A stretch of 64,000 bases of DNA from Adineta vaga (Eukaryota; Animalia; Rotifera): the NCBI GenBank assembly GCA_021613535.1, contig CP075494.1, forward strand, positions 620,001-684,000, given 5' to 3'. The position numbers and the translations under genes were made by a program. The notes beneath the pieces are model-generated. The model saw only the letters and a list, made by a program, of their open reading frames with translations. It had not been told where the DNA came from and did no database searches. Below, in pieces: positions 14,751 to 64,000 of the stretch. The first letter of the stretch is position 1. The number at the start of each line of letters is the position of its first letter.

Positions 14751-16326
14751 ATGGTTACAGCAGCAATCCACTGTGCCCTATTTATTATTTTCAAGTAGTT
14801 ATAAAAATTCAATATTTTATTTTATAATAAATATTTTGATTAATTTAGTTTATCAATAATAAAAGTAAATTGTTATATATGTTATGAAACATCTCAATAT
14901 AGTCGATGTTCAACAAATAGTGCATGTGGTTGTTTTGATATGGTAGATTCTGATGGTACTGGAATATGTGGATTTCTTTGGATAAGTTGTTCTCAACTTA
15001 ATTTATGTAATTCTTCAAATAATATTTGTGAGAAATTTGGTGCTATATGCATACATCATCCTCGTTGTAATTCCCATCCTGTTTGTTATCCGTCATCAAT
15101 GATTGATCAAAGAATATGTCCAACATTAAAAAGTAAGAAAAAAACTATATTATCATCATAGAGTATTATTTTCAAATGAATTGATTTTTATTAATAAATA
15201 GATATTACCACAACAACTATAACTACAACTACAATTCAACAGGCTTGTCTTTCTTGTCGAGTGTATGTGTCAGATAGATGTAGTATCCACACCCTCAAAA
15301 TATATTGAAAACTATTTTTCTTTAGGATGGGATAATACTGGTAGTATGAATAGTCGAAGATTTGGTCATGCAGCATCTGTTTTAGCAGATGGAAAAGTTA
15401 TTGTTACTGGTGAAACTCAAGGTTTCGATACTTTTTATAGTGTTAATTTAAATGATGTTGAAATATACGATCCATTATCAGAAAATTGGACAACTACAAA
15501 TAATATGATTCATCCACGAAATACTCATACATCAGTTGTTTTAAAAAATGGAAAATTATTAGTTATTGGAGGAATAAGTAATACATATGTTTTAAATAGT
15601 ACTGAACTATATGATCCTCAGACAAGAATTTGGTCTTTTACTGGATATCTTAATAAGAAGAGAAATTTTCATACATCCTCTTTATTAATAGATGGAAAAG
15701 TATTAGTTACAGGTGGAGCAAATCCTTATAGTATAATTAGTACTGAATTATATGATCCTGTAACACAAATTTGGACAATTACAGGTAATATGACTTTTTC
15801 ACGACAGAAACATCAAGCATCTTTATTAATAAATGGAAAAATTTTAATTAGCGGTGGATACGGAGATGGTTATTGTTTGAATAGTACGGAATTATATGAT
15901 ACTCAAACAGGAAAATGTACAATTACAGGTAATATGAAATATACACGAAGTGGTCATACATCAACTGTCTTAACAAATGGAAAAGTATTAGTTACTGGAG
16001 GATATGATGGTAAAAATACACTAGATAGTGCTGAATTATATGATCCTCAAACAGGATTATGGACAACTGTCGAAAATATGAAATATGCACGAAAGGAACA
16101 TACAGCATCTTTATTAACAAATGGAAAAGTATTAGTCGTAGGTGGACAAGATATATCTATGTTAAATACTGTTGAATTGTATGATCCAATAACACAAAAT
16201 TGGATAACTATTGATAATATGAATTATAAACGAGGTTATCATACAGCATCTATTTTAACAAATGGAAAAGTATTAATTGTTGGAGGATATTCTAATATCA
16301 CTTTAAATACTGCAGAATTATATTAA
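14751..16326 (+). CDS. Putatively secreted protein: Cys-rich N-terminal domain, Thr linker and kelch beta-propeller
   Basis: About 7 kelch repeats (GKVLVTGG...AELYDP..W) in 15326-16326; upstream exons encode a hydrophobic leader and the Cys-rich CSTNSACGC...CIHHPRC. The junction near 15240 is not clearly in frame. Confidence 0.8.
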
Positions 16327-41716: not shown

Positions 41717-43680
41717 TCGTCTGAATAGATTTGACGAGAACTTTTAAAATGCTTTTGAAGGGGATGCTTTTTTAATCTAGATTATAGAATAAAATTTGGT
41801 GAAAAATTACAATGAGTTTCATACGAAAAGAGAAAATAGCCTTAATCTTTCTCTGTCTGTTTCTATTGGCATTCAGCAGTGAATTATCTTTAACATGTGT
41901 GTTGCAGAGGATTCTACTTAGTTTTCTCTTCTCAAAGAAAAACTAGACAATAATGAATGAAGCATAAAAACAAATAAAACAATATCTTAGATAATTATGA
42001 TAATTTCATGTTTTTCATACTACAGTAGTTGCTCTTTTTCTTTATCATTCGAAATATCCACCGAGATGTATACATGTCAAGTTCAATAAATTTCTCATAA
42101 CGAATCAAAGTAAAAAAAATATTTCTAGTTACCATTGATAAGAAGAATCATTTAAAAAACCTCCGACGAACTTTGTTGAGGAAACCAATACTTCGAGATA
42201 TTGGAGTACAAGCACTATTATCAAAACTAAAATTTTCTACAGAAAAGAACACTGAAATTGAATTTGTCTGACAGACACAGCGAAATAAGCCATCCAAATG
42301 GCAAACCCAAAGTGCCAATCTATTCAAACAACTATAGAACATTTTCTTTTCAGGTAAAAAGCCTTTTTTTTGCAATCATATCTTCGACCGTAAAACAATG
42401 AAATTATCGGTTATCATTTTTTCCAAGAATACTGAATAAAAGAGAAAAAATACAAATAGAATCACACCTTAGCATGCTTCTTCTACTCAGCGATCAAATT
42501 ACGTATAAAAGCTCAACATAAATATTATCAGAACAAGTCATTTGATACATATTGTTGAAATGTTTCGTAAACTCCGTCTGATGATATCCATAGACAAGAT
42601 CGAAATCGCGATAACAGTGGAGTGAGCCATTCGGTAGTTATTATTCTTTACATCACGATACAATAACTGATATTTTCGTAGCAATAGTGTAGGTGTGACT
42701 ATCTTTTCTTTATCAAATGATCAAGTGACAGATTTTTGCATGTATCAGGAAAAACTACAGAAGTATGTCGTTAATTTCAATTACGAGTGGGATTTTCATC
42801 ATGTTTCATCACGCAATTCATTTACGTGTGTTATTATTCTCCGCTATTCACTTCCTATGACTTTTTGTTGACGACGCGACAGTTTACCTTTTTGAGTCAT
42901 GGTTGAATGTACTTATAAAAGCTGTTTGTTTTTTCTGATTTTGTTTTAGTTCGGTATGTTCTTTCTTGATCGACAGCATCACTTTCGAATATGAGACGAC
43001 GATGCCTACTCTTATCTATATTAAATTTCAATCCTTCACTGTCTTATTAAATATATACCATTAGTTGCATATTTACAGCAGCTCTTTCCAATCTTCTCGT
43101 CTTCTGAGAGAGCTGAAAGTGTGTCTCTAAAAACGCGGGAAGTGTGACGCTGCTATTTCGTTTGCACTTTTCTATTAGCAATCTTTATTTCACAATTTTA
43201 GATAATATTTCTTCTAATTATTTGATATGTTTCGTCATGTGCACAATCGTGTTCGTTTCAACTATTTAGCTAGTACCGTCGACAAGCAGATATCGTACTA
43301 TGGTAAGACCTACTGCATAGATCTCTGTGTGATACTCCATCCTTTTTCGTATTTTTCGTAACAAAATCTATGTGCAAGACTTCTGTTATTTCATTGAAAA
43401 ATCGATTAAGTGACAACGCCTCTCGTAGAAAGCTATAGTGCAGATCGATTGGTTTCTTTGATTGTCTCGAATTGAAATAATACTGATGTGCTCGCAAATA
43501 GCGTTATATTATGAATATATGAGTGATATGATAAAAAAGATTTCCAATACAAGATCTATCGAACAGTTGTATGTTTACATTCTTATTCTTGTTGCGTTTT
43601 CAGGTGGAACTTCTACAAGAATACTTCCGTCACGGACACAATCAACGAGTCCTGTTGGTCAAACACGAGAGGTTAACTCG

Positions 43681-44940
43681 ATGAGGGAACAATTTCGTCA
43701 AAATATGCAAAAATATTTCGAATCTTCTACTACGGGAAAAGGTCTCATTGATTTTCTTTCGTTAGCGCATCCAGATCGAATTGGTATCCACATCGATAAC
43801 AATGACTATTTGCATTTGTCATACGATCCAAATTTATTTGTTTCTGACGCACGTATATTTGATGCTTACAACGTTATTCCAAAAATCGAAAACACGGCCT
43901 TTCAAACTTCATTGAGTCAGAAGCAGACAGTTCCCATTCATCGACAGGGATCAGATAACATTATGTCAGGAGTATTTTTACAACAGGATTGTCTTCAAGA
44001 TCAAGTGTCTGACTTGTTAGCGAAGCAAATACTCGGGAAAGATAGCGTATATTTAGCTCAAAGTGGATATGCCGCTAATTACGGTCTACTTCAAGCAATA
44101 GTTATCCCGGCGACGAGTCACGTCTATATCGATACCGCTGCCCATGAATCACTTTGGCAAGGTGCCAGCCGTGGTATTATCCACAAGATCAAACATAATT
44201 GTCTAGACGATCTCGAACAAAATCTTCGTAAATTTGGTAGTGGTATTATTGTTGTTGACTCTCTCTACTCGGCGAAAGGCTCGATTGCCAATCTGGTAGA
44301 ACTATGTGATCTCAAGGAGCGATACAACTGCATGTTGGTAGGCGATGAATCTCATTCAATTGGATTGTACGGACCTCATGGTCGTGGTCTTGCAGCATTA
44401 GCGAATGTGACAAATCGTATTGACTTTATTACAGGTAGTCTGGCTAAAGCATATTGTGTTCGTGCAGGATTTATTGCCGGTCGTGCCGAGGAAGTATTGT
44501 ACGTGAGAGAAAAATCGTCATCGTCGATATTTAGTAGTGCACTTATGACTTGGGATTTGCAATGTCTTCAACGTGCTATCGCAATCATTTACAATGCAGA
44601 TAATAAGCGAAAAAGACTAATGGATCTTGCAACAGTCGTACGTCATGCTGCAGTGACATTAAAATTTGATGTCGAACAGCCATCGTTGCCAAGTCCCATT
44701 CTATGTCTGAACGGTGGACCAAATATACTTTCGAAAAAACTTCAAATCTACTTCGAAAACGCAGGTATTTCAGGTGCCATATTCGTAGCACCTGCTACAC
44801 CCGCTACTCGATCTATCTTGAGACTCACATTGCATGCGGGCTTATCGGATGAAAACGTCGCAAGAATAATCAGTACACTCGAATCTATTGCTCGATGTCA
44901 TCGCGCTGATCTTCCACATACATTTTTAAAGCATTCTTAA
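43681..44940 (+). CDS. PLP-dependent alpha-oxoamine synthase, CqsA/LqsA (alpha-hydroxyketone autoinducer synthase)-like
   Basis: Motifs NDYL, MSGVFLQ, LAQSGYAANYGLLQ, VYIDTAAHESLWQGA, GIIVVDSLYS, DESHSIGLYGPHGRGL, GSLAK (PLP lysine), IFSSAL, PAT and RLTL. The reading frame is open from 43462; a candidate acceptor at 43603 and a 33-nt exon at 43270-43302 suggest spliced 5' exons. Confidence 0.88.
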   Translation: MREQFRQNMQKYFESSTTGKGLIDFLSLAHPDRIGIHIDNNDYLHLSYDPNLFVSDARIFDAYNVIPKIENTAFQTSLSQKQTVPIHRQGSDNIMSGVFLQQDCLQDQVSDLLAKQILGKDSVYLAQSGYAANYGLLQAIVIPATSHVYIDTAAHESLWQGASRGIIHKIKHNCLDDLEQNLRKFGSGIIVVDSLYSAKGSIANLVELCDLKERYNCMLVGDESHSIGLYGPHGRGLAALANVTNRIDFITGSLAKAYCVRAGFIAGRAEEVLYVREKSSSSIFSSALMTWDLQCLQRAIAIIYNADNKRKRLMDLATVVRHAAVTLKFDVEQPSLPSPILCLNGGPNILSKKLQIYFENAGISGAIFVAPATPATRSILRLTLHAGLSDENVARIISTLESIARCHRADLPHTFLKHS

Positions 44941-45119
44941 TAAATGAGCCAATGAGAAAGATCCAAATCATGAAGTATTTTACACTTATTTAAATTTCAA
45001 ATACGTTTTTTTCAATCACTATTTTGAATTATGTATTAGATTTTTCAATAATCTAAAAGCAATACAAGTCAATTAATTAATGATGATTATTATTATTTAA
45101 TAAATTTAAAAAAGTAGTC

Positions 45120-47234
45120 TTATTCATTTGAAGATAAAATAAACTTGTGTACTCGATGATTTTGCATATCGCCTACATAAAAATTACCGTGTCTATCGAA
45201 TGACAAACCGACAGGCCAATTCAATTGATTTGATTGTCCTCTGTTTTCTCCACCAACAATGATATTTCCTTGTGTGGCTCCTTTGATCCAACGCATGATT
45301 CGAGCATTACCAGCATCAGCTACGTAGACTGTACCCAATCGATCGACAACGACTCCTTCAGGAAAAGACAATTGTTTAAGTTCATTTCCCGTATTGTGAC
45401 CACCAGCTACAATAATTCCTTGTTTTGCACCTTCTTCCCATTTCATCACACGATGATTTTTATATTCAGATACATATACTGAACGATCTTGATTGACAAA
45501 TACATATGTAGGGTGAGAGAGTTGATCGAGGCGGTTTCCACTTCCATTCCCACCTGCAACTACTATCCCTTCAGATTCTCCTCTTTCAAATCGCCTTACT
45601 TCATGTCGCTCATCATCAGTGACATACAATGCTCCCTTCTCATCCATTGTTAAACCCCAACAACTGATATTCGAAATCATCGTTTCTCCATTTGTACCAT
45701 TCCCACGACGCCATTGAACAACTCTTCTGTTCGAACGATCGCAGAGGATGAGACTATTTCCAATTTTATCCAAAATCACATCTCTTGGGTTTGCCAATTT
45801 ATAAGTCGAATTTCTACCAGCAACTACTCGACCATTCACTGCACCCGATTTCCATTCCGTAATACGATTATTTGCCCACTCAGAGACATAGACAGTTTCA
45901 TTATCATCAACATATAAACCTAGTGGCTGGTAGAGTTGATTGGCTTTATTGCCTGCTTCCTTTCCTCCAGCTACAGTGACACCATTTTCTGTCCATTTTG
46001 CATTCGGATAAATATCAATACTAGGTGATCGTAATGGTGCTGAAATAAAATTAAAATATGAAGCAAAATTCAATATCAAACTGAATAGCAGAGACGATCG
46101 TTTTTATAACTCTCTCTTTATAGACCAAAAGGCGAAACATAGATGATGGTGAACTTTGGTGAATGACTGATGAAAAGGATTAAATATAACATATCAAATA
46201 CTGATTTTATAGATCATAAATCTTGGACAATTATTTTTGTTCAAGATCTAACAAGACCGAGATAGTCTTTGAGATTCTTATATTTGGCAAAGATGTTTCA
46301 TTAAAAATCGAACTATTTAACTGACTTTCATGCTATCATAAGAAAATAAGTATTTATAGAATCGAGTTTAGATTTCAATACAACGCGGTTAAAATAATTA
46401 CGTGGTTTTTTGAATTGTTCCATTTTATACTTCAACTCTGGAATTTTTTCAATAGATTGATTATTCGATGTTTCCAACAGTTGAATTCTTACAATGAATA
46501 GATTATGCAATATTTTCAATCGATCAATATCAATGAAATTCTTAATAGAAAAAAATATTAATATTCCACATCCAACAATCAATAATAAGATAAATAATAA
46601 TAGAAATTTCCACATCTTTCTTCAGTTTACTAATTGTTTCCTTTTGTAAGTTGGAGGTTGTGGTTTTTCATTTGAGTTCATCATTGGTATTTGATTAATA
46701 TTTGTATTATTACCACAAGTATTTTTTTCATTAACGAGAACTAAATTAGATTTTCGATAAATGTAAAATATAAATATAGTTAAATGCTTACGTTGTGGCA
46801 TAGAATATTTATCTTCATTTTGATGTTGATCTTCAAGAATTTGATTTAACATTGGTGGCATTATCATTGATAGACTTTCAACTGATTGGTTTTGTCCATC
46901 TGATTGATTGTGTCTTCGATATTCTAGATTAATAAAATACAAAAGGAAATAAATTTAAAATAAACAAAACAAAAAACTTACCTCTTAATAATTTCATAGC
47001 ATCAATACATTGAATTTCATCAAATGCATTTATTAAAAAAGTAAAATCTTTTTCATTGATTTTATCTTGATCAAAAAGAGAATCCATAAGACTGAGTGTT
47101 CCACTAAGTGTTGGATCATCTCGAATTCGTCGTGGTACATCATTGCCGAGATAGAAATGTAAACGTTTTCGATCATCGTTACTAAGACGATCTTGTAATT
47201 TCAAAATAATAGCACGCAAACGATGATTATCCAT
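45120..47234 (-). CDS. DED (death effector domain)-TM-NHL repeat membrane protein, interrupted by one in-frame stop
   Basis: Exon 1 MDNHRLRAIILKLQDRLSNDDRKRLHFYL...LMDSLFDQDKINEKDFTFL (DED-like); all introns phase 1; TM WKFLLLFILLLIVGCGILIFF; last exon (about 46040-45120) encodes NHL repeats; TGA at 46622-46624 is in frame just before the TM. Confidence 0.75.
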
Positions 47235-47674
47235 AAATGCGTATGGTTTCTGCAATAAAATAATAACTCATGTTGAAGATTTAATGTAGAAATACTTTAC
47301 CTTTTTCTCTCTTATATGATGAAACAGATTATCTATATCCTATTATGATTCAATAACTTCTTATCAAACAATTTCTCTTACACATAAAATAAAAACAAAC
47401 AAAATAATAATACGATATGGTCGATGGCAAAGAACACACAAAAAAAAGAAAAAGAATTAGAGAAGCACATGCAGAACGAGTGCTATAGACGCAAAGTATA
47501 AGTTACAACGATACAGAACAGAAAGAAAAGAGAACAATAATCGAGAAAGGATTACTTGAAGGACTTTATAAATAATGGTAATCTTTATTTTGTAATAGAT
47601 TTCTCTGACCGATTTAATACCAAGGATGTGGATGTGGATGTGGATTCAATTGTTATTATACCCTCGCAGCGAAA

Positions 47675-49777
47675 TCAATGATCCTCATTTTCATTCTCAA
47701 TTAATGACGTTAATTTTTGACGAATAATCTGAAGTGTATTTTGAAAGGATTGTGTATTTGGATGTATTTCGCCTAATGCACGAGTACTTAATTCAATAGC
47801 TTTAAGACTATAATCTAATGCATCTTGATAAAAACCTTTATGATAATAAGTAAACGCGATATTATTATAAGTAATTGCTAATGATGGATGTTCAATAAGT
47901 AAAGATTTTGTTTCTATATCTAAACATTTTTTATACATATTCAAAGCTTGATCATAGCGTTTTTGTTCATAATATATAGTAGCTAAGTTATTTAATGATT
48001 CAGCAATAGTTGGATGTGTTGATGGTAAATTTCGTATCCAAATAGTCAAAACTTTCTGAAATTGTTCAATAGCTTCATCGATTTTATTTTGATCATGTAA
48101 GATCATACCCATACAATGAAATCGAGCTGCTAAAATAGTTTCATGATTTGAATGACGTTGATCAATGTCAAGAGCTTGTTGAATATATATAAGAGCAACA
48201 TCAAGTTGACCTAATTCACGATAAACACCACTCATATTAGCAAATGTAAGAGCAAATTCTGGATCATCATCTGATAAATACGACAATTTAATTGCAAGTG
48301 ATTGTTCATATTCTGTAATAGACTTTTCTAATTCTCCCATTTCATGATAGATAAAACCGATTTGATGATGTAATGCTGCTTGAGATTGTTGATCACTATT
48401 ATTCACTTCATTCAATGCTAATTGTAAAAACTGTTTCGCTTCTGTATATTTTCCAATATTAAGTAACAAATTGTATAGACGATCTCTTGGTGTAGCGTGT
48501 TGCACTTGTTCCCGCATATATCGAGTTAATTCAGTCAGTTGAAGATCATTAGCGTTCGTTAATGTCAATTCAACAAGCCAAAAATCGTCATGTGAATTTT
48601 GTTGTGTGATATTTTCAATGCGAAAGACAGTTCCCATGGAAAAGAGAACTTCATTTTCACCATCACCAAAGAAACTTATTTCATCAATTTGAGCAAAGAC
48701 TGGCATATCAGTATCATTATTTCGTGCATGAATCTTTAGTAGAACAGCAGTGATATTATCATCCAATAATGCATTATTACCAGCAAACATTTCAGCTACA
48801 TCTCTATTTTTACTAGTTGATAAGAAAATATTGATCGATAAAAGACCACCTTGATTATTTTTTAATTTAAGAAATTCATTAGATGACATTTGTTGACCTC
48901 GATAGAGAATAATTTCATTGAAATCTGAAGAGTTAATAGAATTATTTTGTTGATAATGATGCAAATAAACAAGTTGTTCGTGAAGTTCTTTAACAAATAA
49001 ACGCATAGCATAAAGCGTTTCAATATCTTGTAATCGTAACGCTTTATTTAACATTTTATACATAAATCCATCTCGAGTATACCACCAAATCGATGAATGA
49101 TTTTGATAATTCTTTTCCAATTCATCAATACGATTGAGTTCTTGATGATTATCAACATATTTTCGACGACAATATTCAATCATTTCCGTTAAATTACTAG
49201 TTTCATTATTAGCAATATCTAAAAGATATTCTTTAAGTAATTGAGCGTACATGAAATTTGCTTCTTGTTCATCATTAGTTGAATTTTCATTTCCAATAAC
49301 ATTGAAACCGATCAAATTGTGTTCACATATTTTAACATCTTTTCGTAATTGTGCACAGATATTTGTCATAGAAGAGAATATACCTCGACATTTTTTATGT
49401 TTTTCAAGGTATAGTTCTTGTTGATTGCTCGTTTTCTCTTCATAGAATATATAAAATAAATGAATTTGTCTTAATTGATTCAATATTTGTTCAAGACTAG
49501 TCTGTATACTCGAAGAATTGGTAATAATCAAAAATATATATTCATTTTTAATATCAGTTATATAATCAATAAATATATCGATATCATTGAATACGTGTAT
49601 GTCATTGAAAATGTGATGAAATTCGTCAATAAATATTGAATATTTCTTCGCATCACTATTTTCACTGATTGAGATGTCGAACCAAATGAGAGTTAAGTTT
49701 TCTGCATTTTGCTGACGAGTTTTACTGAGATCGTCTCTTATTCTTATTGAACGTTCTGAAAATGATTCAATTTGCAT
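47675..49777 (-). CDS. NAD:arginine-type ADP-ribosyltransferase domain plus TPR-repeat protein
   Basis: R-S-E motifs LYRGQ, FLSTS and ENEVLF; WWYT motif; C-terminal TPRs (HPTIAESLNNLA, HPSLAITYNNIA). Confidence 0.9.
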   Translation of the reverse strand: MQIESFSERSIRIRDDLSKTRQQNAENLTLIWFDISISENSDAKKYSIFIDEFHHIFNDIHVFNDIDIFIDYITDIKNEYIFLIITNSSSIQTSLEQILNQLRQIHLFYIFYEEKTSNQQELYLEKHKKCRGIFSSMTNICAQLRKDVKICEHNLIGFNVIGNENSTNDEQEANFMYAQLLKEYLLDIANNETSNLTEMIEYCRRKYVDNHQELNRIDELEKNYQNHSSIWWYTRDGFMYKMLNKALRLQDIETLYAMRLFVKELHEQLVYLHHYQQNNSINSSDFNEIILYRGQQMSSNEFLKLKNNQGGLLSINIFLSTSKNRDVAEMFAGNNALLDDNITAVLLKIHARNNDTDMPVFAQIDEISFFGDGENEVLFSMGTVFRIENITQQNSHDDFWLVELTLTNANDLQLTELTRYMREQVQHATPRDRLYNLLLNIGKYTEAKQFLQLALNEVNNSDQQSQAALHHQIGFIYHEMGELEKSITEYEQSLAIKLSYLSDDDPEFALTFANMSGVYRELGQLDVALIYIQQALDIDQRHSNHETILAARFHCMGMILHDQNKIDEAIEQFQKVLTIWIRNLPSTHPTIAESLNNLATIYYEQKRYDQALNMYKKCLDIETKSLLIEHPSLAITYNNIAFTYYHKGFYQDALDYSLKAIELSTRALGEIHPNTQSFQNTLQIIRQKLTSLIENENEDH

Positions 49778-50363
49778 TGGAATCTTTTGTCGCCGTTGTT
49801 TTTTATGTATAGTTCTGCAATTAATAATAGCCTTGCATAATAAGTCTTATGAGAATCTGAATTGTAAAATATAATGCAAGAAAAGCAATTAATTTTACTT
49901 ACCTATACATGTTTACTTCACAGGTAAATATGAGTATTACTCATTTTTTTTCTTTCATGTTATTATTTATGACATTTTTCATCTATAATTACCAACAAAA
50001 ATATATATTTTCATTTATTTATTTTAACATACCTTCGTTATTCTTATTTCGATGAAAAATACGATTTGACTGACAATATTACATTTGAAGAGTGAATAAA
50101 GGCATTAGAAATGTATCAGATACATCATATAAAGAACGAGATATCACAATTGTTTAGTTACAATCTGTTTTTAGAAGAGTAATCATTTCCTATTACTCAT
50201 AACGTCATTCAGACTGCGTATCGTTTTTTCTCATCAATAAATACAATTGATCATTATAATTTATCATAGTAAATAACGAAGAAAATGATACCTTCCTGGT
50301 TGAAATATATTTGGAGCTCTCTACGACAAAAAATATGACGATGACATTATTACCGACGTTCAG

Positions 50364-50411
50364 CACTCATGACCAGTTTCGACCTTTCTCAAAAATCTCA
50401 TCAGATAGCTT
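50364..50411 (-). ncRNA. Degenerate minimal hammerhead ribozyme, same family as 8748-8795
   Basis: Minus strand reads aagctat-CTGATGA-gatttttgagaaaggtc-GAAA-ctg-GTC-atgagtg; core intact, stem I mismatched. Confidence 0.65.
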
Positions 50412-52849
50412 CATTTTTAAAATGATCTTAAGGTGTCAACTCTTACTAGAATTAGTTTGACGAAGTTCAATCTCAAGGGAATAAAAAGTTACAGATAAGC
50501 GGTGTTAGTATATGGGATAGAAGAAGTGTGAAAAATAAAATTTAAAAGGAAAAGAAATCAATCGGTGGGAAACAACTGATTTTGTCATTTGAATGTTGAC
50601 AAAAGAAATAATGTTCAGCCGATCTTGGTTGTCTCAACTTTTTTCTGAAACTAAACTGTTCATAGCACTTCCTTCTGATCGATCTTTAGAGTATCCATCT
50701 ATTACTACGTTTACGCACTGGATTATTATGTTACACGGAAGTGAGGGATGAAAAAATTTCAAACACAACCCTCTCTACGTCTCCTGTCGTTTTGTGAGAT
50801 ATGAATTTTTCAGTCTGAATGATTCTGGGCCATCATCAGGTATCTCCGCTAGTAAATCATAAAAACTCACACTTCCTATTGATAATGCATAATCTTTAGC
50901 TACCCATCGACATTTATTCAACATAAATCTCTCAAATATTTTTCTGAATACGTAGCTAAATCAATATTTTCACCATTCATTCACCACTACAATTACAAGA
51001 AGTCAGTCTCGATACTTGACATATAAATGCCGATCAGTTATAGGTAAAAGCAAAATAGAAGCTACAGAACCCAGAACCACAACACAACATGAGCTAGTAC
51101 GTCTATGACCTAATCAAACACAACTTCAAAAACAAAATCATCAAACGTGAGTCTCACAGAAATACGTACATATAATTCAACAGTTTTTCTTTATGCCAGA
51201 AATAAATTAACCTATCTTATACATCCTTCTAATCCTTATGGCAACATAAGAAGAAAACGCAACGATCAAATAACAAACTGCATCAAAACCAACAAAGTAG
51301 ATCTAATATTGAAATAAATCTATCTTTCATCAACATAGTTTTAACCATGTATATCCCATTATTCTAAGCAGCACAATCAGTTTTCTCCAATTAAATATTA
51401 AATCACATCTTCATATACCAATAAACTAAATTAACGATACATTTTACCTAATCCGATTGAATTAATTTGAAAAAAGACTCATATCAATAATTTTTCTTCT
51501 TTTCGAACTACTCAATACCTAACTTTCAACCATATAATGCACCTCGTGTATATCAAATACGTATAGGTTATGGTAGATGCTCACACCACAATGAACGAAT
51601 TTTATCAATATTTTTTTTTTCTTTTTTTAAGGAATTATACATCAGTATATATTGATTTTGTGATTTTATGCCATCTGAAGATCTGCGTAGCTGCTCACAA
51701 CCACATCCTCAACAGTTCATACGACGATTTATGTAATAAGCTTCATATACGGTTAAAAAATGATTTCGTATGCATTGTACTTACATTTACCTCTTCTTTT
51801 TATTTTTTCTTATTACACTCGTTCATACACTCTCATTTAAATCTACCCCCACAATACGTCACGATATACAACATAGCTTCTCTATAAATAGTATATGTGG
51901 GGAATATCCCATATATTTATATCCCGAGTGCACTAGGATACATGACGTAGTATCTTTATAAATAGTATATATGAGCAATATACCACACACGTGACCGCGT
52001 CGATCGTATTCTCTCCTCGCTTCACTTAATCACGTTGATTCAACGAACAAAACATCTTCTTTTCTAGGTATATTTTGATAAAGCAACAGAACGAAAAAAA
52101 AATACAATCGATATTCTTAGTAAGAAGAGAATTTCGATAGATATTGATAATTTCTTATTTTCTTTAAAAATTCATATGCAAATATAACTGATTTGCGTGC
52201 AAAATGTTATGAACAAAACGTGAAAATTTGATCTTCAATCAAACATTTTTTTGTTGAGACGCTGTTTAATTTTAATCGTACGAAATTTCGAACTCTCATA
52301 TTTGAATTATCTTAGCCTACTCTAACGAATGAATTTCATCAAGGCAAATATGTTTACTTCTGCCTATATAAAATATTCAAATTATTATTGAATTTATTTT
52401 TTTCTAATAAGTTTAATAGTTTTAAATGAAACAGTATAATTCTTTTATCTTCTATTGATCATAATTAATAGGAAGAGATTCATTTTAAATAATATTGACT
52501 TTATAATATCGTAGATAGTTCGTATAATTAATTTTATCTATCATCTATAAACTAAAATATATTTTTTTCTTTTCTGTATATGATCAACTTTTCTTCATTA
52601 CTAGACCGTCTCAAGAAATAAAAAATAATATCTATTTGATCTGTTTAACGTAACTTTGCTCATATTTTAATCGCTCAGTATTCCCCATCCCCACTCATAA
52701 TGACGTCATTTTTTGTTTTCTCCATTCGTATTGATGTCATAATTCCCCATCTTTTATCTTACCTGTATGATACATAATATCCCCTCTCACGTAAATAATC
52801 GTCGTTCTTCTCATTCAATGAAAATCGTCATATGAGTCAAAAGAATGAA

Positions 52850-52872
52850 CGAGAGAGAGAGAGAGAGAGAGA
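52850..52872 (+). repeat. (GA)n microsatellite upstream of the PKS, followed by a TATA-like tatataaaa near 52900
   Basis: Direct reading. Confidence 0.7.
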
Positions 52873-53282
52873 AGGAGGAGGAGGATAAGGACAAACAGTT
52901 TATATAAAAGCCCCTGGAGTATCGATAGAATGTATTAGTTATTATATGATGAATTTAGTCCTTTGTACATTATACATTTACTAGAATTTTGAATATAAAT
53001 AACATTTGAATAAATAGTGATATTATACGCTCAACCAATCGCAAAGGTATAGTAAATGACGTAGTATTAAGAATAAGAATACTTTGTATAAAAAATCATG
53101 CTGGAGAATATGTGAAATGATTTATTTGAAGAAGAGATAATTGGATCTTTTGTCTTCTTCGTATATTTTAATCTAATCTATTATGTACTTATGTATTTCT
53201 TGTTTTAGATCTCAGAATCTATTACGCTTTATTCTTCTACTTTCTTTATACATTACTTTATTGTAAATTTTAATTATTCAAC

Positions 53283-56200
53283 ATGACTTCCAAAATTATT
53301 GCTCAAGAACCGATAGCTGTTGTAGCTATCGCATGTGAATTTGCTGGAGATATACATTCGGCAACAGATTTATGGCATGTATTAGAACAGAGTAAAGATG
53401 TTGGCAGTGCTATTCCACAAGAACGTGCTGATCTTGCCTCATTTAGTGCTCATATGGTCAATCAAGATAAGGATAATCAACTTAGTCAAAATTTAATTCG
53501 TGGAGGTTATTTTCTCTCTAATGCACAATGGGATACCTTTGAGCAAAGTTTTTTTGGTCTTTCCAATAATGAAGCTCTTAGTATGGATCCAGCACATCGT
53601 CTACTTATGCTTAAATTTGTACATTTAATCGAAGATGCTGGTTATACCTTAGAAAAGATGTATGGTTCACGTACATCAGTACATATTGGTCAATTCTCCA
53701 CAGATCAAGCACTTACTATGTGTCGAATGAAACCCGAATTTCGATTACGATTACATGGACCAAATGCAAGTCTTTACAATGCAGCTGCTCGACTTGCATA
53801 TCATTTTAACTTGAATGGTCCTAATGTGTCACTAGATGTTGCTTGTTCGTCATCATTAGAAGCTGTTCGTCAAGCTATACAAACTCTTCGAGCAGATGAA
53901 GCAGATATGGCAGTATGTGGTGGTGTCAATGCTGTCTATACACCAGAGAATATACTTAGTGGTTCACTTATTGGTGCTCAGTCACCAGATGGAAGAAGTC
54001 GATCATTTAGTATTGATGCAAATGGTTATGCTAAAGGTAATATTCATATTTATTATATAAGTTTAGATATTATTTTAATGATCTATTTTAGGTGAAGGTC
54101 TTGGTCTTGTTTTACTGAAACGACTAAGCGATGCTGAACGTGATGGTGATCGAATCTATTGTATTTTACGTGATGTTCATAGTCATCATGATGGAAGTGA
54201 AGGCAAGACTAATTTTGTTATACCATCTGGTATTGGACAGACACGTCTTCTTGCTGATATTTATCGACGAAGTGAAACAGATCCTAAGAGTGTTTTCTAT
54301 GTGGAAGCACATGGTACTGGTACACCAGTAGGTGATCCCATTGAAGCAAATGCTTTAGGTCAATTCTTCCATCGTTCATCAATAGATCCTCCGTTACTCA
54401 TTGGATCTATTAAAAGTAATCTTGGACATACAGAAGGTGCAGCTGGTATTGCTGCTCTTATTAAAGTTGCAATGTGTATGCGTCATCGTGCTATTCCACC
54501 AAACATGCATTTCACAGCACTCAATCCAAAAATTGAAGCACAACGATATAATCTACATGTTGTTCAACATTATGTACCATTTCCATCTGTAACAAACAAT
54601 CCAATTATTATAGGTATCAATTCTTTCGGCATGGGTGGTAATACGACGCATGCCATTGTCGAAGAATATCGACCGCAACAGAAAAAATTATTGAATGAAT
54701 TTGATCACAATCATAATAATCAAAACAAACTTGAACTTAAACAATCCTTTGTTTTTCTCTTCTCGAGTAAGTTCAAATTTTTCTATTCGTATTCATTATT
54801 TTCTTGTTTTATTTAGCAAAAAGTCAAGAATCACTCGTCAAACAAGTCGCACAATTCAATATATGGTTACAAGAAATGTCTGACAAGATAAACGATGATT
54901 CTGATACTTTCCTTGCTCGCATATCTAAACAACTTCTTCTCAAACGCACAATCAGCTATGAACATTTAGCCATTTTTATATCTACTGATCTTGCACAGTT
55001 ACAGAATCAAATCGATGCTTTTCTTGCTCAAAAAAATGCATCTGGACTTCTTCTCACTACACGTCCAATGTTATCATCAAGAAAAATTTGCTTTGTCTAC
55101 AGTGGTCAAGGACCTCAATGGTGGGCAATGGGTCGTCAATTATACAAGAATGAACCAGTCTTTCGTCAGTGGATACAACGAATCGATGCTGAATTCACAA
55201 AAATCAATGAAGATAAATGGCAATTATTAGATGAACTTATGGAGACAAAAGATGAAAAGACATCTCGTATTAATGATACCAATATCGCTCAACCTTCTAT
55301 ATTTGCTATTCAAGTTGCTCTAACTGCTCTTCTCAACTCGTGGCAAATCTTTCCTGATACTATCGTATCACACAGTGCTGGAGAACAAGCAGCTGCTTTT
55401 GTTTCAGGTCGTATTACATTAGAAGAAGCTATTCGTATCGTTTATAATCGATCACGTCTTCAAAATCGTAACACTCGTCAAGGTGGTGGTATGTTAGCTG
55501 TCTCTATGAGTGAAGAACAAGTGAAAGATGACCTTCTTAAAGGTATAGAACATCTTGTCTCAATTGCTGTCATCAATAGTCCACATTCTGTGACATTGAG
55601 TGGAGATGAGAAAATAATTGATGAATTGTTTGAAATTCTTACAACATTTCATCCAAATGTGTTCAAAGCGCGACTTCGTATTGAAAATGCTTTTCACTCA
55701 CATCAAATGGATCTATTTAATATTCAGAATGAAATGCTTTCAACACTTGGCGATATTTCAGGTCTTCCTTTACAAGATCCACAACAAATGTTCAACGTAC
55801 AATGTAGTAAAGCTCGTCTATACTCAAGTGTCTATGGTGGCTATGTAAATGATCATACACCATTAAATGCTCGTCATTGGTGGGCTAACGTTCGAGAATG
55901 TGTTCGATTTTACGATGCAATGACAACTATAATTCAAGACGATGCTGCAGATATCTTTCTTGAAATTTCACCTCATCCAGTATTGGCTACATCAATTGAT
56001 GAATGTTGTGAATTACATTCTTTGAAACATCTTATTCTTCCAACATTGAAACGAAAGGAAGATGAACAAACAACATTACTTACAAGTCTTACTCAACTCA
56101 CTTCATCACCAATTGTTTGGCAACATTATCTTGAATCTCGAGAAATCAAATCCACTGATAATGATAGTGAACTTTTTGAAACATTTCCATCATATGCTTT

Positions 56201-59200
56201 TAATACAACTTCTTGCTGGTACGAATCCAAAGATTCAGTCATTGAACGTCTTTCTTATCGTCTTCCCAGTCATCCACTTCTGGGCATTCGTCAATGGACT
56301 CAACAGACTAATCCAACATGGAGAAGTCTCATCAATATCAATCTTCCTCAACACGCCTTCTTAAAAGATCACAAAATTCAAGATGCTATCTTATTTCCAG
56401 CTAGTGGTTACATTGAATTAGCATTAACTGCCAGTCGTCAATTACTTTCATCGACTGACGATTCTCAATCAATTATTGTCTTCGAACAAGTTGAATTCAT
56501 TAATGCACTCGTTCTTACTGAACATGAATTGACAGAAATATTCACTCAAATAGTAATGCCAATGCGTGAATGGTTTATAATACAGTCGACCATGGACAAC
56601 AGCTGGTCAAGATTGTATTCGTACATCAGGCATGTCAGGTGTTGATGTTCTTAAATCATTCACTGATACAAAATTACTTAATCAACATTCATTAAACGAA
56701 TTTACACTTCATGCTCGAGGTCAAATTAAGATAGGTGATGACAAACAACAATTACCACTTCTAACTGATGTACCCATTGATCGTGATTTATGTTCTACAC
56801 TTGAACCAGATAATGTCTATAAACATCTAATGTCACGTGGTTATCAGTATGGATCTTTATTTCGATTGATACAATCACTTCATAACACACAATCAATTGT
56901 CGAAGGTGAAATTGATTGTACTATAGCCAGTCAAGATAATGTTCCAGTCTATAATCTAATTCATCCAGCTGTCCTCGATGCCTGTTTACATCCAGCTTTA
57001 GCTATATTACCTGGAATTTCTACTACTTTTATTCCAGTTTCTATTAATAAGATAACTATATATGGAGAAATATCAACGTTAAATTCACCAGTACAAGTTC
57101 GTGCAGCCTATCATGATAACATTTGTGGTATAGCTAAGCAACGAACGTATGAATTTGATTGTACGATTTGTTCAAATGATACAGAAATGAGAAAACCTTT
57201 AATCAGTTTTGATCGTATTACAATTCAGCAAGTACAAGGTTCACAGTCCGGCCTATGGGCATCAAACACATCCGTGTTCGATAAATTGAATATATTAGTA
57301 GATTTACCAAATCAAGAACTCACTACACATCTTGATACGATCATGAACAATTATTGCTTAAAAACAGTGTGGAATGATGAACGAATAAGAATTGGTGCAG
57401 CTGATCTTCTACCATCAACTGAATACATTATTAAGACTCACATTGATTCTACGGGTAATGAAGATCTAATTGAATCTATTGAACCGTTAAATCTACTGGC
57501 TGCATATTATGCTCAAATGGCTCTTGAAGATTTGACACTTGTTCCTATTCAAGAACAACAACAAGAATCACTTTTAGCTGCATGTCGTTCTCTTACCTTT
57601 CATTCGAAAGCAAAACCAACATATCATTCAACCCAGATCTATCTCATGCAATTGTTGCGTCAATTTCCACGTCTTACACCAATTTTGTCTGTTTTGTCTA
57701 CTTGTGGACAAAATCTCAGACAAGTCCTCAATGGACAATACGATGGAATCGATGTACTATTGGGTAATGAAAAGATGGAATCGGAATTGCAAGAAATTCA
57801 ATCACTCATATCTTCTCATCAAACATATTTCATTTTTGATATTCTTAATCAATATCTTCAAGAAAAATTTGGTAAAATATTAGCTGAACGTAAACTTCGC
57901 ATATTCTGGTTAGGCAGTGGTAACAATTCGGATGATCTACGAGTATTTCTTCTTTTACTTGATTTATCAGAAAAAACAGATATATTAATCGACATAAACT
58001 ATACAAACTCGAATCCACATGTACTTGAACAAGTTGAGAAAACTTTCACTACGCAATTGAAAGATCAAAATCGAATACGTATAATCTATGATGACAAATT
58101 TGACTTATTCAACAATGAAAATAACAAAAATATGATCGTCGAATCATACGACATTATATTTGGTGCTAATAAATTACAAGGCAATCAAGATTTATCATAT
58201 TCACTTGTTATTCTTCGTCAACTACTCGTTCCTAATGGTCTTCTTCTTCTACTGGAATTAACTGATGCTCCACTTTACTTCGATATTATCTATGGTTTAA
58301 TAGATCAATGGTGGTCTCCAGTCGATCACCGACGTGCTCTACTCAATATTAATCAATGGACAAGAAGTATACGAGAAATAGATGGATTTGAAACTGTTCA
58401 AACTCGAAATACATCATTTGGTAACTCATTTATTGTAGTCCAAAAATCGACGTCATCTAAAGTTTTAACTATGCTCGAAGAACGACAAAGTCAAGCATGG
58501 CTTATTTTTGACGATGATAGTACACCTAGTATGGGAAACGCACTAAAATCTCTCTTGCCATCTGTTAACATCACATTGTTACATGCATCTAATTCAAGTT
58601 CCGACAATATTTGTTCTAAAATTGAAGAAATGATGACAACATATGCGCAGGTACATATCGTTTTTGCTTGGTCACTGAATCAAAAATCAATCAATGATGA
58701 CAGTGAAATGGCAATTGCACAATATGAAACAAATATATGTGATACATTTATTCATATTCTTCAAACAATACAAACAGCAGAACCACAGTCGCATCCATTT
58801 GTATATGTTCTTACACAAAATGTTCAACCTGGTGCTGGTAGCGATTTAAACCCAATTGGTTCACCACTTATTGGTCTTGCACGTAGTCTTGCTCTTGAAT
58901 ATGAACAACATCATTTAAAACTTATTGATTTACAATCGAAATCATCACCAGCCATGATACCATCTCTTGTTCGTACACTTACCGAACATCTCATAACATC
59001 TAGATATGCAGATGATCTTGATGAAATTGTTCTTCAACACGATAAACAAACTGATACTATTCATCGCTTGGAATGGCATTATGAAATGCTTCAAGAAGAA
59101 CAAGATATTAACGAATCAGTCAAATCAGAACAAACGACAATTATTCCACACAACGATGCCGATCAACAACCATTTCGTCTTCAAGTCGCTCCATCTCGTT

Positions 59201-61929
59201 TTCTGGATGATTTAACATGGGTACCCGATGTAAAGAAAAACATACTACATACTGACAAAATAGAAGTTCGTGTACATTGTGTTGGTATCAACTTTCGAGA
59301 TGTTCTTAAATCGAGTGGTCGCTATCCATATATGCGTCCCTTTGCACAAACTAGCAATGATCAAGCTATGGTTGATCGTGATACAGAACCTGGTATTGAT
59401 TTTATCGGTACTGTTGCACGTACTCATTCAAACGAGAAAGTAAAAGTAGGCGATCGTGTTTTTGGTATGGCACCAGGTGTATTTCATTCCCATGTACATC
59501 TTAGTCCTAATGAATATGTCCGCATCCCAGACGATTGCAATCACTTTACTGATGAACAATTAGCTGCTTTACCAAATGCTTGTATGACTGTTCTATATTC
59601 ATTAAAATATCGTGTTAATCTACAACCTGGTCAAACTGTACTTGTACACGCAGCAACCGGTGGTACCGGTCAAGCTTGTATTCAATATTGTCAGTCAATT
59701 GGCGCTCGAGTTCTGGCTACTGCAGGCACTGATGAAAAACGACGATTTCTTCGTGAACACTATGGTATTGAACACGTATTTAATAGTCGAGATCTTTCAT
59801 TTGTAAATGGTGTACGTGCGCTTTTACCTAATGGAGTTGATATCATTGTTAATTCGTTGTCCGGTTCTTTTCTTCAAGAATCAGTAAAATTACTTGCCTC
59901 ACAAGGTCATTTTATTGAATGGGGAAAACGAGATTTATTTGACAAGAAAAAATTGTCTATGTTCGATCTACGTGATGATTGTAGTTTCCATGTTATCGAT
60001 ATTACTTCACTGTATGTTCATCGTCGCGATATCTTCGGACAATTAATTGAAGAACTTTTACAATTGATTATCAAAGGCGTTTTCAAACCAATTGAACCAA
60101 CCAAAGCATATGAACCATCAGATATCATTGACATCTTTAAACAATGTAATAATGGTCAGATGAGTGGTAAATTTGTTCTTCGTCTTACTAATTCTCAACA
60201 ACCATTAAATTTAAACTGTCAATCACCTCCACAATGCACAGAAGGTAGTGTTTACTTTTCTTATTTCTAATGAATCTATAATATTTCACTTTTTTTTCTC
60301 GTTCTAGAAGAAGATCCAATGTTTCCATTTGAAGTATGTCATCAAGGTACAATTTTAATTTCGGGTGGTTGTGGTGGTCTCGGTCTCACAATGTCTCGTT
60401 GGATGATAGAAAAACGTTGTGTCAAACGTTTGACGCTTATGAGTCGACGAACAGTAGCACAAATTGAACAAGAAGACAATCCTGAATATGGAGAGTGGCA
60501 ACGATTACAACAGGCAGCAAAAAAATACGATGCTCATATTGATTTAGTTCAAATTGATGTCACTAATTTTGAAGATGTTCGTAATCTAATCGAACAACTT
60601 AGTCAAACACCTTATCCCATACGTGGTATCATTCATAGTGCAGTAGTTCAAGAAGATCGAAGTTTGGGAAAATTATCACAAGAAAATCTTATACATGTCT
60701 TAGGACCAAAAGCTCGTGGTGCTTGGAATCTTCATCGAGCATCAGAACTTGCTGCTCCTTCACTTCATTTCTTTGTTCTCTTCTCATCGATTCGTAATCA
60801 TATGATCGATCTAGCATCAGGTGGATACAATGCTGGCAACCAATTTCTCGATATTCTTGCTCGTTACCGTGCTGAAAAACTCAATTTACCCGCTCTTTCA
60901 GTCAGTTTGCCTGCAGTGAGTGGTGCTGGCATGTTTCATCGACATCGTGAAATGCTGACAAGTTTACAAAATACATCAGGTTTTGAATTGGTACCTACAG
61001 TTGGTGTATTTGAACTTATCGATCGATTTCATGTCAATCAAAAGTCTTGTCCATGTCCAATTATCTTTGCCGCCAATTGGAAACAATTATATGAAAATCG
61101 AGATAAATTAGTTACACATCAACTACGCAAAATAGCAATACAACAATATACAATTGCAAATGGTTCGTCAATGTTAACTATTTCATCGGATGATGTTGAT
61201 TCATTCGATTCGATCTATGATAAGTTAGAAACCATTGTCGAGCGAACACAAATTACCGTTGCTCGACTCTTGGGTGCAAGCAGTAATGATCAAATTTCTC
61301 TCGATCGTTCCCTTGTCAGTCAAGGTATGGACTCATTAGCTGCTGTATCACTTTACAATTGGTTAGGACAAGAGACAAACATATTTATTCCATTAGCTGA
61401 TCTTCTTCAAGGACTTTCAATACAAACTATTGCCGAACAAGTACATAAGAAGCTTCATAAAAAAAAACGAACAGATACAGAATCAAATGACTCCGGAATT
61501 GATTTTCATATTGAATCGATTGAAGATAATGAAACGAATTTATCCAACAATTTATCTTACACTGGTACAGAGAATATTCTATGCATACGACGTCCAATTA
61601 ATTCTGAATGTCCCATTCTCTTCTATATCTTACCAAATTCTACTTCCGACAACACTCATATGCCAGAAATAATCGTGGAAAAGATATCAAAAAATAATAA
61701 TTCTCCTTTACCAGCTGCCATTTATACTATTAATAAACCACAAGCATCGATGACCAAAGACATAACAAAAATCGCGAATATGATGATCGCTCAAATGCGT
61801 CGAATTCAACCATATGGACCTTATAAATTAGTGACTACACGTGGTGAACAAGGGGAAGTGGTCGCTGGTGAGATGACGAATCAACTCAAACGACATTCAG
61901 TTGATTCCACCATTCAACTACTTTCGTAA
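53283..61929 (+). CDS. Highly reducing type I polyketide synthase KS-AT-DH-(psi-MT)-ER-KR-ACP-(psi-TE), 3 introns and one frameshift near 56580
   Basis: Exons 53283-54036, 54092-54766, 54817-60244 and 60308-61929. KS DVACSSS/HGTGT/KSNLGH; AT GQG/SHSAG/AFHS; DH HKIQDAILFP and HPAVLD; ER LVHAATGGTG; KR GGCGGLG/YNAGN; ACP GMDSL; TE-like QPYGPY. Confidence 0.93.
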
Positions 61930-62297
61930 TGATATAATGGAATAAATTGGATATGGATGAACTATTGGTAAAAAAAACTTGTATACGATATGCTACACCT
62001 ATCCATTTGGATTACAGAGTTTGCATTCGTATGAAATATCATGTTTTGTTTTTCTTTGTTTTGAAAGAACAAATGTTGTTCGTTTCTTTCTGTGTAATTT
62101 GATTTGTAACTTTCATTTGTATATTCTATTGTTGCTTTTTTTTAAATCTTTTATTTTCAATGATTTAAAAATCGTTTTCTTTTCTTTAACTCAATATATT
62201 ATTCTTTATTTATAAAACTTATCCTTTTTTTTATAGATACTCTTTTAATTATCAATTCTTCAAACTTGAATTCAATAATAATTATTTATTTATAATT

Positions 62298-64000
62298 ATG
62301 GACTTAACTTCCTATCGACGAGTTGCATCTTCGGCACTTAAAGTTTCCGGCAGATCGAAAGCTATAGCTTCATATGCTCAACAACGTATTTGGCTCCATG
62401 AGCAACTCTATTTTGATCGAATGTCTTCTTCACTAGCAATCTACAATATTCTTCTCCCATTAAGAATCAAATGTGGCTCGCTATCAGTAGAACATGTCCG
62501 ACTCGCTATACTTGCAGTGCTTGAAAAGCATAAAGTTCTTCGAACGGCTGTTCGTTTTAATGCGGAAACAAATCAACTCGAACAAGAAGTACAACCACTC
62601 AGCCATGATGCTTATTCGTTTGAACATACCCGAAATGTATGCTGTGCCGAACAACTGGATGCAATGCTCACGGCTGAAACAGTAACCAACTACTTTGATG
62701 TAGAAAAGGGCAAAGTATTGCGTTGTCATTTAATACGAATCAATGACGAGAATGAATCTGTAAATCTTCACTCAGGGGATCTTCTTCTATTCACTGTTCA
62801 CCATATTGCTTTCGATAATACTTCACTTCGATTATTTACTCTGGCCTTTGCCGAAGCATGCGGTCAATTAGAATCTGTACAGCCACCAAACAAATTACCA
62901 CAATATGTTGACTTCACTCTTTATGAACAATCTTTAGTGCAATCATCGAGTGCCGAACGAACACGCCAGTTCTGGACATTATTGCTTCAGGATTATGATT
63001 GGACTAAAACATTTATATTACCGGTTAACAGCTCACAGATCACAACAACTGTTCGCTCTGGACGTGGCTATTCAATCGCATTTAATCTGAATGCTGATTT
63101 AGTACAAGCACAGATGGCATTTGCTGCACTTCACAATATTTCTATGTTTCAACTATATCTCGCTTGCTATTACGTGTTTCTTTTCAAATTAAGTTCAGTA
63201 CAAGATCTGTGCGTTGCCGGTACGTTCAATAATCGTCCTTTGGCAGAAATGAAATCGATGATTGGAATGTTTGCAAATACGATACCCTATCGAATCAATA
63301 TTAATCCAGACGGTTCATTCCAAAAGTTGGCTGAACAAGTACAACATTTATGCTTGTCCATTCTTAATCATGCTTATCTACCATATCAACAAATTCTTGG
63401 TGTTCAAGCAAACGAAAGATACCCGATGCCCCAAACATTCTTTCACTATGAATCACTTGTGTCTTCCACTACATATAGTACCACAGCGGAGATTGCTACA
63501 AATGATAAGAACGGTACGGTTTTCGATATTTATTATGATCGAGACCGATCACATGGCAATGGTATTGCCTTATTCGATATGACACTGGCTGTATCACATG
63601 ATCATCATGGAAAAGCTACAGAGTGCTTTCTAGAATGCTCAGCTGATTTGTTCCCCAATGAAATATACGTCAAACAGATGGTCGATCGCTTCCAATGTAT
63701 GCTTGAACAATTGTTTTTGGATCAAACATTTAATATCACCACACAATCCATGAATCAATTATCTTTGCTTCGTCCATCAGAAGTCAATGAAATCGATTCA
63801 ACTATCTTCAAGCGACTACCTAACATCAACGAAGGTAAAACTGCGAATTTTCTCTACAAAAGACTCTTTAAATGATATTTTTCTTTCTCTATTAGGACCT
63901 GCTTCATTTGCACAAGCTCGTATCTGGCATGATGAACATGTCAGATTTGATCCCAATCAACCTCAAGTGGCCATCTACAATATGCCATTTCTATTTCATA
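62298..64000 (+). CDS. Non-ribosomal peptide synthetase, 5' part (two consecutive condensation domains; truncated by the window end)
   Basis: C1 ASYAQQRIW...HHIAFD...IGMFANT; intron 63835-63895; second C domain starts GPASFAQARIW...AIYNMPF. Confidence 0.9.

Follow-up and report, generated by a model that had tools for sequence, protein, structure and literature searches.

A probable split PKS-to-NRPS lipopeptide line beside a CqsA/LqsA-like synthase in a subtelomere of the rotifer Adineta vaga

We analysed a 64,000-nucleotide stretch of the genome of the bdelloid rotifer Adineta vaga (assembly GCA_021613535.1, contig CP075494.1; C5:620,001-684,000 of Av20), hereafter the window, which carries genes for a pyridoxal phosphate (PLP)-dependent alpha-oxoamine synthase, a reducing polyketide synthase (PKS) and a nonribosomal peptide synthetase (NRPS). 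A preliminary description of this DNA had joined the three into one candidate cluster, with the synthase as a possible fumonisin-like releaser of the PKS chain. Our analysis favours another arrangement, which we regard as probable: a split PKS-to-NRPS lipopeptide line and an unrelated CqsA/LqsA-family enzyme, which are neighbours in a subtelomere prone to gene shuffling. A lipopeptide route from PKS to NRPS in an animal genome, which had also been raised, is upheld by a dead thioesterase on the PKS, a dedicated first condensation (C) domain on the NRPS, and a pairing of the two genes that is conserved across loci and species.

The PKS and the NRPS are a real cluster, and their locus is already published. 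Nowell et al. 2024 (PMC11258130) reported ~40 NRPS/PKS clusters in A. vaga Av20, enriched in subtelomeres, among them region 5.2 (Chrom_5:665,120-721,107; Supplementary Data 9), graded intact and entered with 8,748 aa and NRPS_term. A comparison with Supplementary Data 9 gave PKS and NRPS coordinates identical to those of the present genes, and the oxoamine synthase (C5:663,681-664,940) lies ~180 bp outside the region. As previously stated, all three genes are on the + strand, the PKS stop and the NRPS ATG are separated by exactly 368 bp, and GT-AG introns interrupt both megasynthase genes. Throughout, spliced models were profiled exon by exon, protein lengths are summed exon lengths, and own-genome searches cover 100.8 Mb on six chromosomes, written C1 to C6 before a colon and a coordinate.

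The PKS ends in half a thioesterase

The PKS gene (53283..61929, + strand) comprises four exons separated by GT-AG introns at 54037-54091, 54767-54816 and 60245-60307, the last of which is removed in two probable RNA assemblies. The domain order is KS-AT-DH-(pseudo-MT)-ER-KR-ACP-half TE. The catalytic motifs are intact (KS Cys/His/His, AT Ser, DH His/Asp, the NADPH sites of ER and KR, KR Tyr and ACP Ser), and profile searches of the methyltransferase-sized region, which looks like a degenerate MT, returned no MT family match. The enzyme is highly reducing, single-module and probably iterative, and would thus be expected to build a fatty-acyl-type chain.

The exons total 2,825 codons once one extra base is discounted; relatives have ~2,830 aa. 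This base, at position 56579 (+ strand), creates a false frameshift inside the DH domain. Because it is missing at full depth in all 4/4 read runs (two probable RNA and two DNA, from three studies, one of the DNA runs being possibly the assembly's own source), we assign it to an assembly error, and PKS paralogues continue in frame across the same position. A pseudogene was therefore rejected. The public model P0121 (I4U23_022095) begins past the false frameshift and is without the KS, the AT and part of the DH.

The protein continues for ~200 residues beyond the ACP serine. This tail matches the thioesterase family PF00975 weakly (E 0.009) and aligns with the N-terminal half of the intact thioesterase of a sister bdelloid PKS (BLASTP E 9e-9). 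In the alignment it stops short of the catalytic Asp and His positions and contains no GxSxG serine; it is a truncated remnant holding the N-terminal half only (61550..61929, approximate start, + strand). Because the thioesterase is a half domain lacking the triad, the PKS cannot hydrolyse its own chain.

The truncation is not peculiar to this gene. In a tail survey, the same short tail recurred dozens of times among the PKSs of A. vaga, A. ricciae, A. steineri and Rotaria, while a sister PKS group retains a GYSFG thioesterase. A quick tree built on the ER-KR-ACP region separates the short-tailed PKSs, as a single group, from those with a full thioesterase (SH-aLRT 100). Since the truncation is common to one group, the loss is old and the remnant has persisted, perhaps because it serves in structure or docking.

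The first C domain of the NRPS accompanies these PKSs

The NRPS gene begins at 62298 and occupies 62298..64000 of the window (+ strand, GT-AG intron 63835-63895) before running on to ~C5:701,466. Pfam and NCBIfam profiles resolve four modules, C-C-A-T, C-C-A-T, C-A-T and C-A-T, followed by a Pls/PosA-like terminal domain of left-handed-beta-helix type. The HHxxxD motif is present in 6/6 C domains and the serine in 4/4 T domains. The A domains are interrupted by introns and divergent. The TIGR02353 (Pls/PosA) model matches the end of the protein in two overlapping pieces of 99 and 91 bits, below its cut-off of 423. The likeness to Pls/PosA poly-amino-acid synthetases lies in this terminal domain; the rotifer enzyme has four C-containing modules and differs from their single-module, A-T-terminal layout.

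The C-C start noted earlier is correct, but module 2 is C-C-A-T as well, and C-C was rejected as a start-only signature. The recurrence arises because C2-A-T is near-identical in modules 1 and 2, a duplicate with a period of 5,048 bp. What sets the first C domain (C1) apart is its kinship. It is N-terminal, with no T domain ahead, and has an intact HHIAFD motif. Its best PDB matches are a PCP-C didomain, Txo1 and LgrA domains (E 1e-16 to 1e-21), whereas the classical starters SrfAA-C1 and CDA-C1 match at E 1e-6 to 6e-6 only, and the starter clade is not the closest. Judging from these comparisons, C1 may act as a starter does while standing outside the classical bacterial clade of starters.

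Within its own genome, C1 is most similar to six C domains (43-49% identity), all of them the first domains of NRPSs that adjoin a same-family PKS at a distance of ~0.3-2.6 kb (C3:0.33, C3:1.57, C3:19.93, C4:14.9, C6:13.60 and C6:13.75 Mb; the C4 pair is convergent). Internal C domains of the genome are only 30-38% identical to C1, and those of its own NRPS ~30%. The pattern extends to other species: the C domain that follows the PKS relative by ~0.6-0.9 kb is 59% identical to C1 in A. ricciae and 48% in A. steineri. The next two first C domains, at 42% and 39% identity, lie at C1:16.82 and C2:15.96 Mb, where no same-family PKS was found nearby. A hand-off would be expected to leave just this trace, one type of C domain accompanying PKSs whose thioesterase is dead, and the connection between PKS and NRPS is upheld.

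Two further arrangements were noted. At C3:16.50 Mb, a short-tailed PKS is without a neighbouring NRPS in the catalogue and could be a trans partner of the NRPSs at C1:16.82 or C2:15.96 Mb. In A. ricciae (L054:18654-28654), a short gene encoding one C1-like domain comes after a PKS relative and before a second PKS copy. This may be a tandem duplication in which the NRPS is truncated, or the C domain may stand alone.

The hand-off need not be direct. A separate hydrolase or transferase could free the PKS chain, which C1 would load only after its re-activation to acyl-CoA or acyl-AMP, as in nemamide or fungal lipopeptide routes; in C. elegans, PKAL-1 reloads a released intermediate (PMC8363725). 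However, the surroundings of the cluster showed no enzyme of this kind, and the nemamide PKS relies on an active and essential thioesterase, whereas the domain is dead across the clade here. We consider release and reloading rather unlikely and, in any case, a variant of our preferred explanation, not an alternative to the PKS-NRPS pairing.

PKS and NRPS are more likely two proteins than one hybrid

The cluster lengths in PMC11258130 assume that PKS and NRPS are co-translated, so that region 5.2 as published is one 8,748-aa hybrid where we see a two-protein line. A gap of a few hundred base pairs on one strand is compatible with such a hybrid. In each of runs X4 and X7 (probable RNA), the PKS was recovered as one 8.8 kb contig from which intron 60245-60307 is removed and whose length is consistent with a start near 53,200 and excision of both earlier introns. 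These contigs cross the stop codon, unspliced to the NRPS, with a tail of 200-290 nt, and end at 62221 or 62135, while the NRPS 5' end lies on a separate contig beginning at 62235. No splice or joint between the two genes occurs in the probable RNA contigs, which are assembled contigs and not raw long reads. The stop position is conserved across the PKS family in the alignment. At C4:14.89-14.92 Mb, moreover, a PKS and a C1-type NRPS are convergent and cannot form a single protein, so the published co-translated length is inapplicable there.

Two points weigh on the other side: contig breaks are no proof of transcript ends, and the RNA status of X4 and X7 is a tool's guess, backed by the spliced intron. 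Contig depth cannot rank expression. On the contig evidence and the convergent C4 pair, we rejected the single hybrid polypeptide, which we regard as highly improbable; two separate proteins are the more likely state.

The oxoamine synthase is a divergent CqsA/LqsA relative

The synthase gene (+ strand) has a first exon at 43227..43302 that had been missed, a predicted GT-AG intron of matching phase at 43303-43603, and a second exon at 43604..44940 containing the open reading frame (ORF) 43681-44940 and the Aminotran_1_2 domain of a CqsA/LqsA-like PLP-dependent enzyme. With exon 1, the protein has 470 aa. The first exon encodes a basic, acid-poor N-terminal extension; similar ones occur in the Adineta models P0003-P0006 and P0012, and a different basic one in P0145. 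The N-terminus resembles a mitochondrial presequence, and the enzyme is perhaps mitochondrial.

Among the families searched, NCBIfam NF005526 (alpha-hydroxyketone autoinducer synthases) fits best, at 318.2 bits versus 155 for BioF and 144 for serine palmitoyltransferase (SPT). This score misses the equivalog cut-off of 428 bits, and the synthase is a divergent CqsA/LqsA relative, not a formal NF005526 member. The PDB comparison gave the same order, with Vibrio CqsA at E 5e-59, SPT at 9e-26 and SphA (9pep) at 5e-6, SphA being the PKS-releasing fungal synthase that was compared. In an AlphaFold model (pLDDT 83), which includes a ~40-residue insertion of low confidence, the top six Foldseek matches are CqsA chains. 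The catalytic PLP lysine sits in SLAKA, and K256, H155, D222 and H225 are invariant in the alignment (numbering from the ATG at 43681). Residue 221 (window 44341-44343), just before DESH, is Gly, where nearly all homologues have Val; this is either a real variant or a base error. CqsA itself condenses S-adenosylmethionine (SAM) with decanoyl-CoA (PMC9516700).

A quick tree with long branches groups the synthase with CqsA-named proteins, apart from SPT. Homologues at 54-88% identity were found in A. ricciae, A. steineri and metagenomic contigs; the close ones form one clade among CqsA-like proteins in the quick tree, and the inspected homologue contigs carry animal-type neighbours such as GPCR, arrestin and Sec8 genes. 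The best reading of these sequences is a horizontally acquired homologue of autoinducer synthases. A literature search, mostly confined to journals without subscription, found no paper on CqsA in rotifers or other eukaryotes. No sensor kinase of the CqsS/LqsS type adjoins the synthase gene; this holds for the neighbouring genes, and no receptor was sought elsewhere in the genome.

Among the closest non-bdelloid relatives, P0023 (L047, Logan SRR28285705) sits amid compact, apparently intronless F-box and ankyrin genes. Such surroundings are typical of giant viruses associated with amoebae, of intracellular bacteria or of protists, and may hint at the donor route. The next relative, P0022 (L046, JGI 3300008886), is on a bacterial contig beside minE/minD, with a type II fatty-acid/PKS operon on the opposite strand.

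No synthase-PKS linkage at the other informative loci

The preliminary description had itself offered conserved linkage as a test of its cluster. The A. vaga genome has two synthase copies, and 82 kb at the second (C5:16.74 Mb) yielded no match to a PKS or an NRPS. Six further synthase loci (L040, L042, L043, L044, L045 and L050) gave no KS, AT or C match by tblastn in the 10 kb downstream, a distance that suffices to reach the KS at the spacing seen in the window. Linkage was found at 0/7 informative synthase loci. Approached from the PKS, the relatives in A. ricciae and A. steineri have no synthase in the 10 kb upstream (0/2), and none lies near the six other A. vaga PKS-NRPS pairs. Linkage thus failed at every informative locus.

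This bears on the proposal that the synthase is a Fum8/SphA-like releaser, joining the PKS chain to an amino acid to give a sphingoid-like aminoketone in one three-gene cluster. A PKS without a working thioesterase does need a release partner, Fum8, SphA and MyrA act in just such a situation (PMC13612406), and the two genes share an orientation at a distance of 8.3 kb. However, the enzyme is CqsA-like, with SphA among its weakest matches, the six other pairs manage without a synthase, the dedicated C domain already accounts for release, and a mitochondrial location, if real, would part the synthase from a cytosolic PKS. Given the CqsA/LqsA affinity, the presequence-like N-terminus and the lack of conserved linkage, we find cluster membership of this kind very unlikely. 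The CqsA/LqsA family uses acyl-CoA and SAM (PMC9516700).

A looser connection is that the synthase serves some PKSs of this family in trans, wherever it is encoded, or that its amino-ketone is the amine acceptor at the Pls-like domain of the NRPS. Both gene families occur across Adineta and other bdelloid-like contigs, the catalogue lists no neighbouring NRPS for at least one short-tailed PKS (C3:16.50 Mb), and animal pathways can be unclustered (PMC8363725). On the other hand, the C1-like starters for which no same-family PKS was found nearby (C1:16.82, C2:15.96 Mb) could serve the orphan PKSs, and the Pls-like ending is found on many clusters without a synthase. We judge this option improbable. 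A full three-gene pathway, with the synthase copy also feeding or offloading the neighbouring PKS-NRPS line, appears a little less probable still.

Several observations count against the independence of the synthase. Its closest orthologue (88%, L049) has 1.1 kb of downstream sequence only and is uninformative, and the flanks examined reached no further than 10 kb. The nemamide genes show that enzymes can cooperate in trans even when their genes are unlinked (PMC8363725). In A. steineri, synthase and PKS share one 457 kb contig, ~133 kb apart on opposite strands. The presequence was called from composition alone. Finally, the chance that any one particular gene lies no more than 10 kb from a cluster is ~0.3-7%, depending on the assumptions, a figure tempered by the many enzyme genes that could have prompted an equal remark. 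Subtelomeres are rich in acquired enzyme genes, so that one such neighbour is unsurprising. The location of the synthase beside the PKS is most likely due to chance, and the synthase is probably independent of the PKS and NRPS.

Neighbouring genes

The stretch between the synthase stop and the PKS ATG measures 8,342 bp and holds three opposite-strand genes; intervening genes had been reported, as two rather than three. They are an NHL-repeat gene (main exon 45120..46079; Pfam NHL 1e-30), a multi-exon gene with a death-effector domain (DED) recognised from Pfam and ORFs (46328..47267, approximate boundaries; E 1e-6), and an ADP-ribosyltransferase (ART)-like gene with TPR repeats (47675..49777). 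The last has matches to TPR families and R, STS and ExE-type motifs by eye, and did not match Pfam ART.

On the far side of the NRPS, a cytochrome P450 gene in one open frame (C5:701,827-703,359, + strand) begins ~0.36 kb past the NRPS stop on the same strand. It has one close paralogue only in the genome (57%, C3:7.61 Mb) and is a better candidate for a third gene of the cluster than the synthase. A UDP-glycosyltransferase-like gene (C5:713,593-715,485, + strand) follows ~12 kb 3' of the NRPS, within region 5.2.

Elsewhere, the window contains a PARP-like exon (9590-10537), a kelch-repeat gene (15223-16323), a MACPF-like gene (27947-29314) and a mariner transposase remnant (36707-37540), which is the usual mixed content of a subtelomere. 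Contamination was rejected in view of the 16.9 Mb chromosome, the spliceosomal introns, the host-like GC content at third codon positions (GC3) and the homologues in other Adineta assemblies.

Discussion

We then propose a mechanistic model for this locus. The reducing PKS, whose motifs are intact, would build a fatty-acyl chain on its own ACP. C1 of the separately transcribed NRPS would take this chain in trans, by acyl transfer from the ACP, and the NRPS would add a peptide of about four residues to give a lipotetrapeptide, released at the Pls/PosA-like terminal domain. The P450 3' of the NRPS may, speculatively, tailor the product. The synthase would join a free acyl-CoA to SAM or to a small amino acid, giving an amino-ketone or hydroxyketone with no need of the PKS, as its family and N-terminus suggest. 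The lipopeptide, the acyl transfer and the substrates of the synthase are inferred from sequence.

A comparable division of labour is known from fungi. In emericellamide and pneumocandin biosynthesis, a separate highly reducing PKS gives the lipid tail to a separate NRPS, by means of a ligase and an N-terminal carrier domain, whereas the rotifer NRPS opens with C-C and closes with a Pls/PosA-like domain. The nearest animal parallel is the nemamide system of C. elegans, PKS-1/NRPS-1, which also makes a polyketide-peptide from two separate megasynthase genes (PMC8363725). Nemamide PKS-1 is multimodular and unclustered and has an essential active thioesterase, with a ligase that reloads the intermediate (PMC8363725); the rotifer PKS, in contrast, is single-module, has a dead thioesterase and adjoins its NRPS.

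Fum1/Fum8 (fumonisin), SphA (sphingofungin) and MyrB/MyrA (myriocin) resemble the locus, since in each a reducing PKS that lacks a working release domain occurs near an oxoamine synthase. In these systems Fum8, SphA and MyrA release the PKS-bound chain (PMC13612406). The rotifer synthase is of another lineage, its linkage is not conserved, and the PKS is followed by an NRPS with an acceptor C domain. A three-gene fumonisin-like pathway in an animal would be striking if true, but the evidence points away from it. The synthase finds its best family, sequence and structure match in CqsA (Vibrio cholerae), LqsA (Legionella) and JqsA (Janthinobacterium), with which it shares the PLP lysine and the family motifs. 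It is 33-40% identical to these named members and differs from them in its ~40-residue insertion of low confidence, its intron, its basic N-terminal extension, the lack of an adjacent sensor kinase and its animal host.

Two aspects extend the account of Nowell et al. The supplements of PMC11258130 that we examined contain no CAI-1, autoinducer or cqsA term, and no mention of the half-thioesterase, the starter C type or the CqsA-like gene was found in them. First, the bdelloid PKS-NRPS hybrids of this PKS family look like two-protein lines. The dead half-thioesterase and the partner C domain predict N-acylated peptides, and the two should be treated as separate genes in expression work. Second, an intron-bearing CqsA/LqsA homologue has been kept in several bdelloid species. 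An active CqsA-like ketone synthase in bdelloids is plausible, though we put this forward tentatively. Such a domesticated quorum-sensing synthase may yield CAI-1/LAI-1-like hydroxyketones or aminoketones that serve as a mimic of bacterial signals or as the animal's own messenger. LAI-1 affects the migration of eukaryotic cells (PMC4669118), and a JAI-1 synthase mutant alters a bacterium-fungus interaction (PMC5080296). These effects make an animal-made version worth an assay.

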